A stretch of DNA of 63,651 bases, the filler included, from Hyphochytrium catenoides (taxonomy: Eukaryota; Protista; Hyphochytriomycota): NCBI GenBank assembly GCA_900088475.1. It is 11 parts of 11 records of this genome, joined end to end, with 100 filler letters (N's around TTAATTAATTAA, not from the genome) between each part and the next. Parts side by side here need not be neighbours in the genome. Positions count along the whole stretch, not along the records: positions 1 to 21,572 come from FLMG01002296.1; 10 more parts are not named here. The stretch is one strand, 5' to 3'. Positions 14,912-21,572 of the stretch are shown here, in pieces (within the stretch, counting starts at the first letter, position 1; the number at the start of each line of letters is the position of its first letter). The notes beneath the pieces were generated by a model. That model worked only from the letters and a program-made list of their open reading frames with translations. It was not told the origin of the DNA and ran no database searches. Made by a program: the position numbers and the translations under genes.

Positions 14912-16995
14912 ATGAGTTCCATTCTCCGCCAGCTTGAGGAAGAACAAGACAAAGTAGAAGCCGACAGGGGCTACAACTGGGAGCAGGGCTTCGAACGCAG
15001 CTGGGAGAACATTGCAGAGGATGAGCATGGGCTCCTGCGGCCCGTTGAGACGGCCCAACGCCAGCGCCAGAAGCGGAGGTAAGTGCCCTAACATCAACAG
15101 TCTATGGCTCTTGAGGTCTCACCCGGCCCTTACAGCCGGTACTTACAAGCACCGCGAGCTGTGCAAAAAGGGATGATACGCTACCTCTACCTGATCCTAG
15201 ACCTATCCCGTGGACTCGAGGATAACGATTTCAAGCCTAACCGCCAGACTGCTGTGCTTAACCTCGCTGAGGTCAGGGTTGGATTGTGCAAGCACGAAAG
15301 GGACACCAGCCCCGCCCCTTACTGATGATTCTCTTTCTGTACATTCGACTCTACATGTCTCCGATCAATCTCTCCTGCCCTGTGGAGGTCCATGTGTCTC
15401 CTCTTCTGTTCCTTTCCTTAGCGTTAATCCGCTATCTCTTCCCTTAAATACTGCGATGTCAGGAGTTTATCACGAACTATTTTGACCAGAACCCGCTGTC
15501 CAATCTTGGCATCATCGTCACGCGAAATGGCAAGGCAGAGAAGCTTACAGATCTCTCGGGGAATCCGAAGAGGCAGGTTGAGGTCAGTCTTGTCCCTACG
15601 AACATCGTTGGAAGCAATTGTTCTGACGAAGAGTTGGCTGCTGACAGGCCCTAAAGGCAAACTTTAGTTTGGGCGGCGATCCCTCCATCCAGAACGCCCT
15701 GGAGTTGGCGCGAATCTCCTTGAAAGTGATCCCTGCGTATGGAAACTGCGAGGTAAGTGAGACAAACAGCCCAAAGAAGCTAGCAACTCTGAAATGATCA
15801 TGACTGAACATTCCGTGCAAGCCGTTATGCTATGCCTTGTCCTCTGACGCCTCCTCTCTTACTCTCTGTCTTGGCTCGTGCGTTATTATGGCCTCCTCAT
15901 GCAGATTGTGATGGTGTACGGCAGTTTGTCCACCTCTGACCCTGGTGACATTCATACTACGATCGACGCTCTGAAAGCCGAGGTACGTCAAAAGAGAGGT
16001 TCTGTCTCGTTCACTCTCTGTCTCTTTGGCCCTTTTATCTTGACCGTCACTCAAGGGTTTCTCTCTCTCTGGCACTCCAAGAAAGTTCGCTGTTCAGTTG
16101 TTGGGCTGGGTGCAGAGCTCTATATACTTCACAAGGTCACCAAGGTGAGAGGCCGATAAACCGTCAACCAACCTGGGCACTCTACTTTTAACTTGATTCG
16201 CTAGACGACTCGCATGGCATTGTACTCTCTTCCGTCTTCGTCCTACAATTTTTGTCCTCGATTGTCCTTTCTGACTTTCAAGAATGTTAATCTATGAGTT
16301 TTCTTCCGGCCGTGGCTGACGAAATCCTCTTCAACTGGTCTTCAGGAAACTGGTGGTGCCTACCACGTAGCCCAGGACCGGGATCACCTGCATGAGATAA
16401 TGAAAGGCTTTCTCGTCCCACCGCCAAAGGCATCAAAGTCAGCGGTAACGTTTGCCTCATTAGTGCAGGTAAGACCTAGAGCTCCAACCTCTATTGGTAG
16501 ACCTTGCCTTTCGATCACTAACGCCAACCTGGCTCTAGATGGGATTTCCTCAAAAGAGGGTCGAAAAGAACCCCTCGCTCTGTATCTGTCATCAGGAGTT
16601 CAAGACCGTTGGCTATCTCTGTCCTCGCTGCTGGTCGAGAGTCTGTGAGCTGCCGACCTCCTGTTCCATCTGCAATCTTCCGCTGGTACGTGTTCCATTT
16701 CTTTATAGACCCTTTGCCTTGTCTACCACCTTCCTCACCCTCTTTGTCTTGGACTGTTGGGCCACAGGTGTCATCTCCCCAGCTAGCGCGTTCCTATCAC
16801 CATTTGTTCCCTGTAGACTTCTTCGTAGAGAAGAGCTCGAAGGAAAGAGAAACGTGCTTCAGCTGTCTGAGGATAATTGCCGACGGAGACGTTCGCGCCA
16901 GTTGCCCCACTTGCTCGCATACTTTCTGCGTAGACTGCGACATCTTTATCCACGAGTCTTTGCACAACTGCCCGGGTTGTCAGGAGAGGATGTGA
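14912..16995 (+). CDS. GTF2H2: TFIIH subunit p44 / Ssl1 (multi-exon)
   Basis: Exons encode GYNWEQGFERSWENIAEDEHG, GMIRYLYLILDLS, EFITNYFDQNPLSNLGII, GDPSIQNALELA, GSLSTSDPGDI, MGFP, GYLCPRC, VSSPQLARSYHHLFP and the C-terminal C..C...CDIFIHESLHNCPGC finger. Confidence 0.97.
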
Positions 16996-17247: not shown

Positions 17248-18231
17248 TTACGCTGCTTTAGAGTATTTGCTCGACCGAGAGGATGCTGGAGGACTCGCTG
17301 AGGCTTTGCTGGTTTTATACTTATTGATCTGGGGCTTGAAAGTGCATTCCATCAGCTCACGCTCCTGCCTCATACGGGCGAGCCGCTCTTCTCTTCGCTT
17401 GAGATAGTCTGCCTGATAGAGTCTACTGGACGCCAAGGACATGTCTGTTCGCACTGTGAAGGTAGACTCCATGCTTTCAATAGAGTCTGAACGTCGTATG
17501 CGCCGGCCGCCTGTGGGAGGCTCTTTAATGACAGGCTTGAACGAGCACTCCTCAAGCTCTCTCTGTCGCTTCATCTCCTCCAGCCTTTCTCTCCGCTTTT
17601 GAACGTACTTGGGATCGTAGAGTCGTGAGGAAGTGGCTGAGGTTCCCATCTCTGTGCAAACGGATAGCCGAGAACGGGGCCCCCGCTTTGGTGGCGGAGT
17701 GCTGTCTACGGCAAAGTTCGCAAGGTTCTCTTCCGTCAAGCGACCAAAGCTCTTACGTGGCTCGGACTTAGCAGGAGCCGAGCTGGGTGCAGGTGCAGCT
17801 CTCCGACTCTGACGGAGTGGCGTCGATGGGTCTTCTCGGCGGCCAGGTGTGCGAGAAGAGGAGCTCGTCATGGTCGGGGCTGAAGAATGCTTTCGGACGC
17901 CTGTGCTAGGGCTGCTTCTTGATACAGGAGAGCGGCTCGGTGTGCCGCGAGAGGAAGTAGAGGGAAGCTTGCTATGCGTTTGAGAGGAAGAGGGCACACT
18001 GCGGGTGGAGCGCTGGGGTGATGGGGAAGGTCCTAAGTCTTGGGTGGACCCGGACGGCGAGCTCTCAGGAGTGTGCCTTCCACGAGAAGAGGTGTGCTTC
18101 TGCAGTCGGTTCTTGATGTCCTTCATGTCCAAACGCAGCGAGTTCAGCTTCTCCCAGATGCCGTCTGTCGTCCGCCTGTGGGGCGATGAGCCATCCAACG
18201 TAAACTCTGGAGGTCTGCTAAGAGTCTCCAT
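17248..18231 (-). CDS. Ser/Arg/Pro-rich protein with two 'SRLY...REL.EC[S/T]FKP.I' repeats (protist cytoskeleton-associated type)
   Basis: Single ORF with a probable ATG at 18231. The duplicated motif reads SSRLYDPKY...RELEECSFKPVIK and SSRLYQADY...RELMECTFKPQIN. Confidence 0.65.
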   Translation of the reverse strand: METLSRPPEFTLDGSSPHRRTTDGIWEKLNSLRLDMKDIKNRLQKHTSSRGRHTPESSPSGSTQDLGPSPSPQRSTRSVPSSSQTHSKLPSTSSRGTPSRSPVSRSSPSTGVRKHSSAPTMTSSSSRTPGRREDPSTPLRQSRRAAPAPSSAPAKSEPRKSFGRLTEENLANFAVDSTPPPKRGPRSRLSVCTEMGTSATSSRLYDPKYVQKRRERLEEMKRQRELEECSFKPVIKEPPTGGRRIRRSDSIESMESTFTVRTDMSLASSRLYQADYLKRREERLARMRQERELMECTFKPQINKYKTSKASASPPASSRSSKYSKAA

Positions 18232-19398
18232 AGCTTTGTAAGATATGGACAATAGGTTCACGCTTGAGATGGGCCTTGCGAAGCTTTGAAACCTCCGGAA
18301 ACAGTGACCAATCCCCTTGGCTGACGCTAAGGTTGAGCCGCAAACCACAAAGTAGGCAAAGGCCCAAGATTGCAGATTAGGAGCGTCCTCGCTTCAAACA
18401 GAGAGGGCTCTTTTAGGAGTGGATAATAGATGGAGAAGAGAGGTGGTACCAAGCCGCTTTGCTGCTCTATTATCTGAGAGAGACAGACAGAGAGTGAAAG
18501 AGAGTGATTGACAGAGAGAGAGAAAGAGAGAGAGAGAGAGAGGAGCTGGGAGGAGAGACTGCAGCAAGGGCTGTGATTAGTTTGAGCTTCTATCATCGAG
18601 AGCGCGCCTTCCTTGGAAATATAGAGATTCAATGAGAAATGGATCAGCGCGGAAGCTTCAGAAGAGAGTTCATCAGTGCATCAGAATATTCGTATCGAAC
18701 GCACATAATAGTAATAGTCCTGAGTCTTGAGGATATTGAACCCTTCTCAGAGGCAGTAATAATGCGTCTTAGTACTAGCGGTTAACGGCTGTTTAGAGGC
18801 AGCGCCACTGCTCGGTCATGTGAAGAAGATGTAGCTGGAGATGTGCCGCCGTCCTGTCCGGCTGTCCCGCTCATGGTCTCAGGTCTCAGGCGCTGCTCCT
18901 CTGGGTGTGGTCGTGGCTTAGCGTTGCCTGCTGGCTGCTGGTGCTCGGCGTAGCTCTTGGCGTCTCCGTCAGCAGTCCTTCGAAGATGTTACAGGGCGTT
19001 GTCGCGCCTCGATTTGGAGGAAGGGTGTGGGATGTCAACCAGGAGATACGAGCATCACAATTGTACGATTGTTGTCGCAAGGACGTTGTTTGTTTGGTGG
19101 TAGCGAGAGGATGTTCTGGGTGGCTGCTGCCGTGCAGAAGAAGGGTGAAAAAGGTGGTCTGAACCAGCAAGGAGAATGTTGAAGAGTGTGCCGAGGAAGA
19201 AGGAAATAAGAAAAACAAGCCACCTCTATGAGACGAAATTTATCTAGCTACCAGGCGTCGTAACAGGGCGCCCTTTCTTTTCTTATTCACCAAGTCTTCC
19301 TTCAGTCACCCAGAGGCGACATTCTAGAGACTCTACTATTCATTGCAAGAGCTACCTAGCACGATGAGAACGGAGAGATGATGGCGGATGCTGCCGCC

Positions 19399-20906
19399 GT
19401 AAGTGTGCTGTAGTAGTAGTTGTTGCCCTGCGCCTTATCCAGCACTGTCTACTGTGCTGGCTGTAAGGCAAAGGACTGGCTACTGCTGAAGCTCCTGACG
19501 ACGGAAGGCTGGCAGCGATGCAACTTAGTAAGAGCTGTGAGAACTATGTGTGCCCTGGTAAATGTAGGGGCAAGCCTAGTAGCTGGACCCTTCAGCAGTA
19601 GCCACTCCTTTGCCTTACAGCCAGCAGCACCAGTAGACAGTGCTGGATAAGGCGCAGGGCAACAACTACTACTACAGCACACTTACATTCTCCTCCTTTG
19701 TCCTGTGGCAGCGTTGTCCAGTACTGGTGCCCTTTCATCCTATGCCACCTTGTCCAAGGGGCAAGACTGCTGCTGCAGGTGCCAGGCCTAATCCATCCCG
19801 ATGCTTGATGAAGGCAGGGCGTGGCAGGGCCTTTGTGAGAGTGTCTGCGACCATCCCATCCGTGCGTAGGTACTTCAGTAGAATTGTAGCCTTGGCCACC
19901 TCCTGTCTGGTGAAGTGGTACTTGATAGAGAAGTGTTTTGTGCGCTTGTGGCTTCCGGCACCTTCCTCGGATGCCAGGCGTAGGGCGGATTGGTTGTCTC
20001 ATAGATGAGTGTGGGTTTCTTCGGCTATGCAGATGCGGACCGGGGCAACTCTGTGGATGACTACAAGTCGACCATGGCATATGCCTTCATCGCTGCAAGA
20101 GGTTGTGTGAGTTGGCAATCTAAGAAGCAGAGCCTGGTGGCTCTCTCAAGCACAGAAGCAGAGTATGTTGCACTCTGTGAAGCTGGGAAGCAGTGTGGCT
20201 CAGGAGACTCTCTCGGGATGATCTGCCTACAGGTCATGCCCCCAAAGGCAACCCCACACTCATCTATGAGGACAACCAATCCGCCCTATGCCGGGCATCC
20301 GAGGAAGGTGCCGGAAGCCACAAGCGCACAAAACACTTCTCTATCAAGTACCACTTCACCAGACAGGAGGTGGCCAAGGCTACAATTCTACTGAAGTACC
20401 TACGCACGGATGGGATGGTCGCAGACACTCTCACAAAGGCCCTGCCACGCCCTGCCTTCATCAAGGATCGGGATGGATTAGGCCTGGCACCTGCAGCAGC
20501 AGTCTTGCCCCTTGGACAAGGTGGCATGGGATGAAAGGGCACCAGTGCTGGTCAGCGCTGCCACAGGACAAAGGAGGAGAATGTAAGTGTGCGGTAGTAG
20601 TAGTTGTTGCCCTGCGCCTTATCCAGCACTGTCTACTGGTGGTGCTGGCTGTAAGGCAAAGGACTGGCTACTGCTGAAGCTCCTGACAACGGAAGGCTGG
20701 CAGCGATGCAACTTAGTAAGAGCTGTGAGAACTATGTGTGCCCTTGGTAGGTGTAGGGGCAAGCCTAGTAGTAGGGGCACTGCAGCAGTAGCCAGTCCCT
20801 TGTGAGCTAGCCCCTGACTGGGCAGTAGGAAACCTAGCCAGAGTAATAGTCAGTTGTAGAAGATGAACAGTGAGACAGGAGTATCTTCCTACCATTCAGG
20901 GGAACA
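19399..20906 (+). mobile_element. Internally deleted, rearranged Ty1/Copia LTR retrotransposon (partial LTR + inverted RNase H/PPT/LTR copy + RNase H + PPT + LTR)
   Basis: Copia RNase H motifs are GYADAD, VSWQSKKQSLVALSSTEAEYVA, IYEDNQSA, RTKHFSIKYHF and MVADTLTKAL, with one frameshift. The PPT GGACAAAGGAGGAGAA precedes an LTR starting TGTAAG at 20582, with a probable end ...AACA at 20906. Confidence 0.9.
19591..20679. repeat. Long inverted repeat: ~430-bp arms (19591-20017 / ~20250-20679), ~97% identical, ~235-nt spacer
   Basis: Direct reverse-complement comparison. The mirrored ORFs 19592-20080(-) and 20288-20677(+) are near identical. Confidence 0.95.
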
Positions 20907-21423
20907 GGTTGATATGAGTTGTCCAGGTGTCTACAAATAACGAAGTTAATAGTGCTGATATTTCCTGACAGAGATCATTGGATTTCTCTTGAGCTTTGGT
21001 GAACGCTGTATCTACATGAAGTTCTAAGAACGGACACTGGGACTAATCGCCCAAAGGCTGTGCTAAGCAAGAAAGGCTAACAGCCGCACCTCGCCGCCGC
21101 CATTATTGTCGTTTGAACAACAACTAACAGTCCGAAAAACGGGACTAAGGTCGATAAGCGACTAGAGAATTGGCTGACAAGAAAGGGGAAGAAGAACCTC
21201 TTCGCGCGGCCGTTGTCCATCTCGCTTTCCCACTCACGAGCACGACTGCAAAGCAAAGGGAGGAAGGGAGGAGGCGAAGGACAGGGGAGTCATTTGAAAG
21301 TTCAATACTGTTGCTATCGTTATCTCAACGCAAAGCAGTAAAGAAAATTTTTCGGGTTCTTCGGCATTAGGTAAAGAGAAGTAGAGTTGGACTGAACGAA
21401 GGCCTTCTGCAGAATCTTGGTCA

Positions 21424-21572
21424 CTACTGTCCCATGCTTGTCGGCAGTGTAAAGGAGTTTGGGATAGGTAGAGGCTTCAAGGAGGTAATTACTTCGTCGA
21501 AGGTCGGGCGCTCAGCTGGGACTGCATTCCAACAACGCTGAACTAGCTTCTGCAGCTCTGCCGTCGTCCTAT
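21424..21572 (-). CDS. C-terminal exon of a TKL-group protein kinase (rest lost in gap)
   Basis: TTAELQKLVQRCWNAVPAERPTFDEVITSL matches kinase subdomain XI (CW..P..RP.F). Stop TAG at 21424-21426. Confidence 0.75.

Follow-up and report, generated by a model that had tools for sequence, protein, structure and literature searches.

Positions 1-21572 of the window (the whole stretch of DNA that was analysed, 63,651 nucleotides) correspond to FLMG01002296.1 of the Hyphochytrium catenoides assembly GCA_900088475.1. Within this piece, positions 19398-21082 (1685 bp) very probably stem from the integration of one non-autonomous Ty1/copia element with a rearranged interior, and the feature spans 19393-21087 when both copies of its target-site duplication are included. 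Its segments follow one another in the order of a 5' LTR fragment in forward orientation (segment A), an inverted segment that holds the end of RNase H, the polypurine tract (PPT) and the start of the LTR (segment B), and a forward stretch of RNase H, PPT and LTR. About 4.6 kb of the interior is missing: the remainder of the 5' LTR, primer-binding site (PBS), gag, protease, integrase, reverse transcriptase (RT) and the start of RNase H. In their place, the unit carries its own 3' region once more, as an inverted copy of 430 nt. The individual features are listed below.

19393-19397, no strand: target-site duplication GCCGC, left copy (direct reading; same as 21083-21087)
19398-19582, plus strand: truncated 5' LTR, segment A, LTR positions 1-190 (repeat search, LTR alignment)
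19583-19589, no strand: left-junction filler CTGGACC, 7 nt, unlike either partner (alignment of 7 LTR copies)
19590-19687, minus strand: inverted LTR start, LTR 98 to 1, within segment B (pairs with segment A in a 93-bp left stem)
19688-19704, minus strand: inverted PPT (reverse complement of 20565-20581, direct reading)
19705-20018, minus strand: remainder of segment B, inverted RNase H C-terminal coding sequence and 3' untranslated sequence (tblastn match 19998-19789)
20019-20249, plus strand: unique N-terminal part of RNase H, from the GYADAD motif; 231-nt loop of the long hairpin
20250-20679, plus strand: forward arm of the long inverted repeat, with the RNase H end, the PPT and LTR 1-98 (422 bp with segment B in the MFE fold)
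20019-20534, plus strand: RNase H coding remnant, frame broken near 20190; pol stop codon at 20532-20534
20565-20581, plus strand: PPT AGGACAAAGGAGGAGAA, abutting the LTR (kept in C1346, C2698 and C3316)
20582-21082, plus strand: full 3' LTR, 501 bp, TG...CA (limits from C3096, C2115, C3288, C3316 and C2698)
20661-20679, plus strand: left arm of an imperfect inverted repeat in U3, LTR 80-98, family-wide (LTR alignment)
20780-20798, plus strand: right arm of the U3 inverted repeat, LTR 199-217 (LTR alignment)
21083-21087, no strand: target-site duplication GCCGC, right copy (direct reading)

The repeat search returned a direct repeat between 19399-19582 and 20583-20771, and an alignment of 19398-19582 with 20582-20771 contains 5 substitutions and 2 indels, the first base of segment A (19398) being C and not T. 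In the same search, the inverted repeat runs without gaps for 409 nt at 98% identity (19590-19998 against 20271-20679); with one 1-nt gap, the long arms comprise 19590-20018 and 20250-20679. The left stem consists of 19399-19454 paired with 19631-19686 (56 nt, 100%) and of 19455-19491 paired with 19590-19626 (37 nt, 97%), with a 4-nt bulge. A preliminary description of this DNA had claimed the three-segment order, a left stem of ~92 bp, a stem of ~430 bp with a loop of ~235 nt, and ~12 differences between the arms. These claims agree with our measurements: the repeat search gives nearly identical segments, the left stem is 93 bp long by repeat search and LTR alignment, the long stem is ~430 bp with a 231-nt loop, and the long arms, which are ~97% identical, differ by 11 substitutions and 1 indel. 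The end of the feature and of its LTR, which the same description had placed at 20906, proved to be wrong, as other copies match for another 176 nt, to 21082.

Identity of the element and evidence for a single insertion

The LTR limits agree among the copies on C3096, C2115, C3288, C3316 and C2698, with TG...CA termini that are shared with other copies, and the boundaries were fixed from these copies independently of the duplication. GCCGC at 19393-97 and 21083-87 exactly abuts LTR base 1 on one side and the terminal CA on the other, forming a perfect 5-bp duplication. Base composition gives a probability of ~0.0012 for such a coincidence at fixed positions, and an empirical estimate at the same spacing gives 0.0015. 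Solo LTRs of the family likewise carry 5-bp duplications, TGCTA on C3096 and AGGAC on C2115. Since a single GCCGC duplication brackets the whole 1685-bp unit, and the solo LTRs of the family show duplications of the same length, the unit reflects one integration event. Read in this way, the outer ends are the true LTR termini of one integrase-mediated insertion and not those of separate copies that accumulated at the site.

Two reading-frame pieces, at 20014-20190 and 20193-20531, sit in different frames and align to residues 442-497 (E 2e-16) and 500-590 (E 3e-17), respectively, of the intact Copia Pol on C3860 of the H. catenoides genome, in which the RVT_2 domain lies at 115-356, upstream of the aligned residues. 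Because the aligned residues directly follow this RVT_2 domain, the pieces can be assigned to RNase H, from the GYADAD motif onwards, and the identity that had been proposed earlier for this segment is thereby confirmed. Farther along, the PPT at 20565-20581 abuts TGTAAGTG, the first bases of the LTR. The unit consequently combines what characterizes a Ty1/copia remnant, namely a TG...CA LTR, a 5-bp duplication, and RNase H as the last domain of Pol, followed by the PPT.

A tblastn search of the whole 21.5-kb piece with two Copia polyproteins returned the RNase H pieces as the only matches, and no gag, integrase or RT was detected in it, as the preliminary description had also maintained. No PBS is found at the locus; the only one seen is in the relative on C651. 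Because the PBS, gag and pol are missing, the locus is a non-autonomous remnant and not a functional member of the family. Pfam searches of the RNase H pieces and of the large ORFs of the window gave no match, and a search for known RNA families (Rfam) across 18000-21572 gave none at E<=0.1. A 66-nt repeat at 18476-18542, seemingly of high copy number, turned out to be only an imperfect (GA)n microsatellite.

Junction anatomy and occurrence in the assembly

The right junction (20018/20019) displays a 1-nt microhomology, a single T overlap; the end of the inverted arm at 20018 was set with the C1346 sequence as a guide, and the start of the forward RNase H at 20019 by the point at which homology to C651 begins. 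The left junction passes from LTR 190 through the 7-nt CTGGACC to LTR 98 in inverted orientation. In all LTRs of the family, U3 contains an imperfect 19-nt inverted repeat (positions 80-98 and 199-217), and the breakpoint of the inverted segment (LTR 98) lies exactly at the edge of its left arm, while the 5' LTR fragment ends (LTR 190) 8 nt before its right arm; a rough estimate gives p <1% for such proximity if breakpoints are uniform along the LTR. Because both breakpoints adjoin the arms of this repeat, we infer that it acted as a facilitator and drew the breakpoints of the two strands together. A clean template switch within the U3 inverted repeat was rejected, since it fails to reproduce the 7 nt at 19583-19589. 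Neither internal junction uses an LTR terminus: one joins LTR 190 to LTR 98, and the other has RNase H sequence on both sides. The PPT still adjoins the inverted LTR start, and no 5-bp duplication flanks the inverted segment.

The junction and family searches covered the assembly of 61 Mb (4759 contigs, ~52% GC), which is fragmented and heterozygous, and in such an assembly haplotypes or separate copies could have been joined by mistake with one of them inverted, or a palindromic read of chimeric origin could have been incorporated. The left junction pattern has one occurrence in the 61-Mb assembly, hence on one contig, and the right junction pattern is found there on FLMG01002296.1 and on contig C1346 only. 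The latter (1618 bp) is a second version of 19960-21572 that shares its end base with FLMG01002296.1; identity reaches 97% in the element and 96% in the unique flank, and the contig covers 63 nt of the inverted arm before it stops. The fragmentation of the assembly, the presence of the left junction on a single contig and the early end of C1346 would all be compatible with an artefact. Nevertheless, C1346 independently holds the right junction base for base, and a chance mis-join would give no matching target-site duplication. Chimeric palindromes, moreover, predict identical arms, whereas a three-way alignment assigns 6 private changes to the forward arm, 6 to the inverted arm and 5 to the C1346 arm. 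Because the inverted arm matches neither the forward arm nor C1346 exactly, a mis-join or chimera can be set aside, and we consider an assembly artefact very improbable.

As each arm has private changes, the structure is older than the split of the two locus versions, although C1346 could be a recent segmental duplicate instead of an allele. The preliminary description had proposed searching the genome for further copies with the same junctions and for intact members of the family; the former search is the one reported above, and the latter found none in the assembly. Since the left junction is unique and the right one confined to two contigs, the rearranged unit has never been amplified, and this lack of further copying is expected of a unit without PBS, gag and pol.

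Timing and mechanism of the rearrangement

The divergence between the 5' LTR fragment and the 3' LTR is ~2.5% (5 substitutions in 190 nt), that between the inverted and forward arms ~2.6% (11 in 430), and that between the 5' LTR fragment and the inverted LTR start ~2.1%. Because these pairwise divergences are alike, the copies of the LTR start would have originated nearly simultaneously. This equal-divergence argument, which rests on 5-12 differences, is suggestive of three copies that began diverging together and of a rearrangement at or soon after insertion.

The best reading of the unit is a fold-back or template-switch product that arose from reverse transcription or soon after insertion. 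We lean towards the former as the most likely course, in which both switches took place inside the virus-like particle during reverse transcription and the element was dead on arrival. In this model, synthesis of the nascent minus-sense strand would have proceeded from the LTR as far as the start of RNase H, where the tip would have folded back onto the strand 231 nt behind it, via the 1-nt microhomology, and would then have been extended by 430 nt, across the PPT and into U3. There, at the U3 inverted repeat, the extended strand would have been linked to a plus-sense strand carrying LTR 1-190, with the addition of 7 unmatched nucleotides. The plus-sense partner would be the product of PPT-primed plus-strand synthesis in the virus-like particle, and a PPT-primed start would account for the exact coincidence of the left end with LTR base 1. 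The model requires a fully double-stranded aberrant product with integrase-competent ends, which is plausible. The border between PPT and U3 is the site of strand priming and strand transfers in reverse transcription, and all breakpoints of the unit lie within ~800 nt of it.

An alternative to be taken seriously is that a full-length copy was inserted first and was subsequently rearranged on the chromosome by a double-strand break with fold-back priming or by replication template switching, together with end joining. The target-site duplication and the intact outer termini fit this sequence of events equally well, end joining or microhomology-mediated repair typically leaves traces such as the 1-nt microhomology and the 7-nt filler, and the U3 inverted repeat could anneal two resected ends. 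In contrast, the divergence between the LTRs (2.5%) is not above that between the arms (2.6%), and any rearrangement after insertion must for this reason have followed it closely. In addition, the breakpoints are clustered at PPT/U3 in reverse transcription, yet they would lie 5 kb apart on the chromosome. An antisense nested self-insertion followed by deletions, or an inversion product of autointegration ('suicide'), is extremely improbable here, even though both are known makers of inverted LTR-retrotransposon segments (PMC11624286, PMC7197481). Either route should leave an LTR terminus abutting internal sequence, together with a separate 5-bp duplication, neither of which is present, and two additional precise deletions would be required; we rejected them on the grounds that LTR termini are absent from the internal junctions. 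The inversion circles that Ty1 and SISYPHUS form by autointegration (PMC7197481) resemble the present unit in their inverted internal segment and arise in the virus-like particle, but they are circular and non-integrated and have LTR termini joined internally, whereas the H. catenoides unit avoids these termini and is integrated.

The template-switching fossil put forward in the preliminary description gains genuine support from its true termini, its duplication, its switch-like junctions, the equal divergence of its parts and the uniqueness of its junctions in the genome, observations that suit both an origin during reverse transcription and early repair after integration. By default, the unit as it stands today is to be regarded as a neutral fossil, on both sequence versions of the locus. 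Defective retroviral and retrotransposon cDNAs arise by template switching and self-priming of reverse transcriptase. The unit resembles such cDNAs in its breakpoints around PPT/U3, in the microhomology and non-templated nucleotides at its junctions, and in having kept both integrase-recognised termini and a normal target-site duplication. A described genomic Copia insertion with this exact layout of LTR fragment, inverted 3' end and 3' end was not found, and the H. catenoides unit is a new example of a known sort of transposon fossil. It provides a clean, datable rearranged retrotransposon with an intact target-site duplication, and it indicates that a fold-back product either was still integrable or was formed right after integration, with a short U3 inverted repeat as the likely facilitator of one junction.

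Hairpin potential and possible silencing of the family

The predicted RNA fold of 19398-20700, in which the inverted arm forms 422 pairs with the forward arm, has an energy of -1089 kcal/mol, and a minus-strand transcript folds equally well (-1040 kcal/mol). On this model, transcription of either strand would give a hairpin of ~422 bp. The preliminary description had portrayed the leftward and rightward folds as competitors; both stems are indeed possible, but the competition is one-sided at equilibrium: the long hairpin by itself, at -1007 kcal/mol, is far more stable than the left one (-214). Only in a plus-strand transcript could the left stem arise ahead of the long one, and then merely for a time.

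Given this potential, the locus might be a silencer of the kind represented by Mu killer, with an inverted repeat that is transcribed and diced and small RNAs that silence the Copia family in trans; we consider this unlikely. An inverted repeat of 430 bp and 97% identity is available, and its RNase H end, PPT and U3 start are all contained in the genomic RNA of the family. The genome also encodes one AGO-clade Argonaute (which has a protein atlas match as well) and a Dicer-like protein in which a Dicer dimerisation domain is accompanied by two RNase III domains. This Dicer-like enzyme and the Argonaute may process the putative hairpin, and any small RNAs would then be a by-product. As to a source of transcripts, the retained piece of the 5' LTR (1-190 of 501) probably has no core promoter; it ends well before the only TATA-like motif (~350, by eye), and because this motif lies beyond the retained 1-190, LTR-driven transcription of the hairpin is unlikely. 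The most plausible source would be minus-strand read-through from a kinase gene that ends near 21427 on that strand, 345 nt from the element.

The arms themselves speak against a maintained function, as 7 of their 11 substitutions are transversions, which are incompatible even with wobble pairs, and they consequently bear no sign of selection for pairing; nor are they better conserved between the two locus versions than the flanks (97% vs 96%). A possible target is the best relative, on C651, which is 93-94% identical, has a gag-pol reading frame of 1204 aa, and presents an LTR end and a PBS, along with gag, protease-region, rve and RVT_2 domains in Copia order. It is, however, frame-broken and interrupted within RNase H, the relatives other than C651 are 72-92% identical and degenerate, and no intact family member was found in the assembly. 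Exact 21-mers of the arms match degenerate copies and solo LTRs only. A search of the genome for an RdRP, a weak search with an uninformative control, returned no match. Searches for a light-harvesting protein, a silicon transporter and an elicitin were likewise negative. Hairpins of rearranged transposons and endogenous viruses are an accepted trigger of silencing (PMC11624286, PMC9868043). The silencing hypothesis can be carried a step further, to a hairpin-RNA gene that a one-step error of reverse transcription produced, that the integrase of the element itself inserted, and that has silenced the Copia family via Dicer and Argonaute ever since, a scenario we regard as rather improbable.

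Among known systems, maize Mu killer is an inverted duplication of a partly deleted transposon (Slotkin et al. 2005, as described in PMC11624286 and PMC9868043). The structural property of this class, an inverted duplication of part of a transposon, is present in H. catenoides: both loci are natural inverted duplications of a partially deleted element without mobility functions of its own, and both offer a long hairpin homologous to the family transcript, provided that the H. catenoides locus is transcribed. They differ in origin, as a DNA transposon (MuDR, 5' end) gave rise to Mu killer and the 3' end of an LTR retrotransposon to the present locus, which, in contrast to Mu killer, is bounded by its own target-site duplication. 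Furthermore, Mu killer is transcribed from a flanking promoter and demonstrably yields small RNAs and heritable silencing, whereas all of these would be hypothetical in H. catenoides, where no intact target was found in the assembly. For the Arabidopsis EVD element, an antisense nested insertion has been proposed, and not shown, to trigger silencing through an LTR hairpin (PMC11624286). That case is likewise of Copia type, with LTR sequences in opposite orientation and a potential LTR hairpin RNA, but it involves two complete insertions with LTRs 2-2.5 kb apart, compared with one insertion, an internal fold-back and arms 231 nt apart in H. catenoides. Rearranged endogenous pararetroviruses with inverted repeats yield siRNAs (PMC9868043) and similarly represent micro-scale inverted rearrangements of an integrated reverse-transcribing element; their loci consist of non-integrase viral DNA with matching small-RNA peaks, while the present locus goes back to an integrase-type integration and its small RNAs would be hypothetical.

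If such units are transcribed, each dead-on-arrival fold-back copy would be a ready-made hairpin trigger against its own family and, if this is true, there would be a simple route from transposon activity to self-silencing. Should the silencing hypothesis hold for the present locus, it would be to an LTR retrotransposon what Mu killer is to its family, and this in a eukaryote that is neither a plant nor photosynthetic; retrotransposons would then be able to give rise to silencers of themselves as an immediate side effect of replicating. The locus itself is small and single-copy, with unique junctions.

A second version of the locus

A contig of about 1.6 kb from the same assembly (C1346:1-1618) is a second version of the locus of the rearranged Copia remnant, matching window positions 19960-21572 at 96-97% identity. 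This contig begins 63 nt into the inverted arm of the element, and its last base coincides exactly with that of the contig in the window. It is probably an unmerged haplotype of the locus, in which case the genome would be that of a highly heterozygous (3-4%) diploid or of a hybrid; a recent segmental duplication of the locus is a possible alternative explanation.

Relatives of the Copia family

The closest relative of the family, with 93-94% identity, lies on the minus strand of a contig whose two limits are both repeat edges (C651:1-4197). It contains:

LTR end
primer-binding site, TGGTTATGGGCCCACA
1204-aa frame that encodes gag, integrase and RVT_2 domains of Copia

The frame is broken near 520, after the 1204-aa frame, and in the RNase H region the homology stops abruptly near base 60, from where unrelated sequence starting with TGTTG, possibly a nested element, takes over. 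A more distant LTR (72-74%; C3288:200289-203631) has the primer-binding-site sequence of C651 directly after it, which makes it the 5' LTR of a sister lineage that is older and shares the tRNA primer.

The Argonaute gene

The sole Piwi-domain gene detected in the genome (C2026:5401-9300) is an intronless AGO-type frame of >830 aa; a run of N at an assembly gap interrupts it, appearing as 29 X in the translated sequence.

Genes and repeats beside the element

Coding features on the contig of the element include:

16609-16995, plus strand: ORF with a cysteine-rich motif at its end, read by eye
17248-18348, minus strand: 366-aa Ser/Pro-rich ORF
21427-21570, minus strand: end of a TKL-type protein kinase, covering its 48 C-terminal residues (PK_Tyr_Ser-Thr, E 1.8e-4)

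The kinase match spans profile positions 230-258 of 258. The gene continues beyond the contig end, and 345 nt separate its stop from the 3' LTR of the element. By eye, the cysteine-rich end of the first ORF resembles the zinc finger at the C-terminus of the TFIIH subunit Ssl1/p44. The Ser/Pro-rich ORF, whose likely start is on the side toward the element, matched no Pfam family except DUF3336, below threshold, and contains internal repeats of a motif of ~35 residues (SSRLY..Y..RRE.RL..M..QREL.EC.FKP). The segment at 18476-18542, considered as a dispersed element, was rejected as such: it is an imperfect (GA)n microsatellite, which gave about 90 spurious 'repeat' matches in the genome-wide DNA search.
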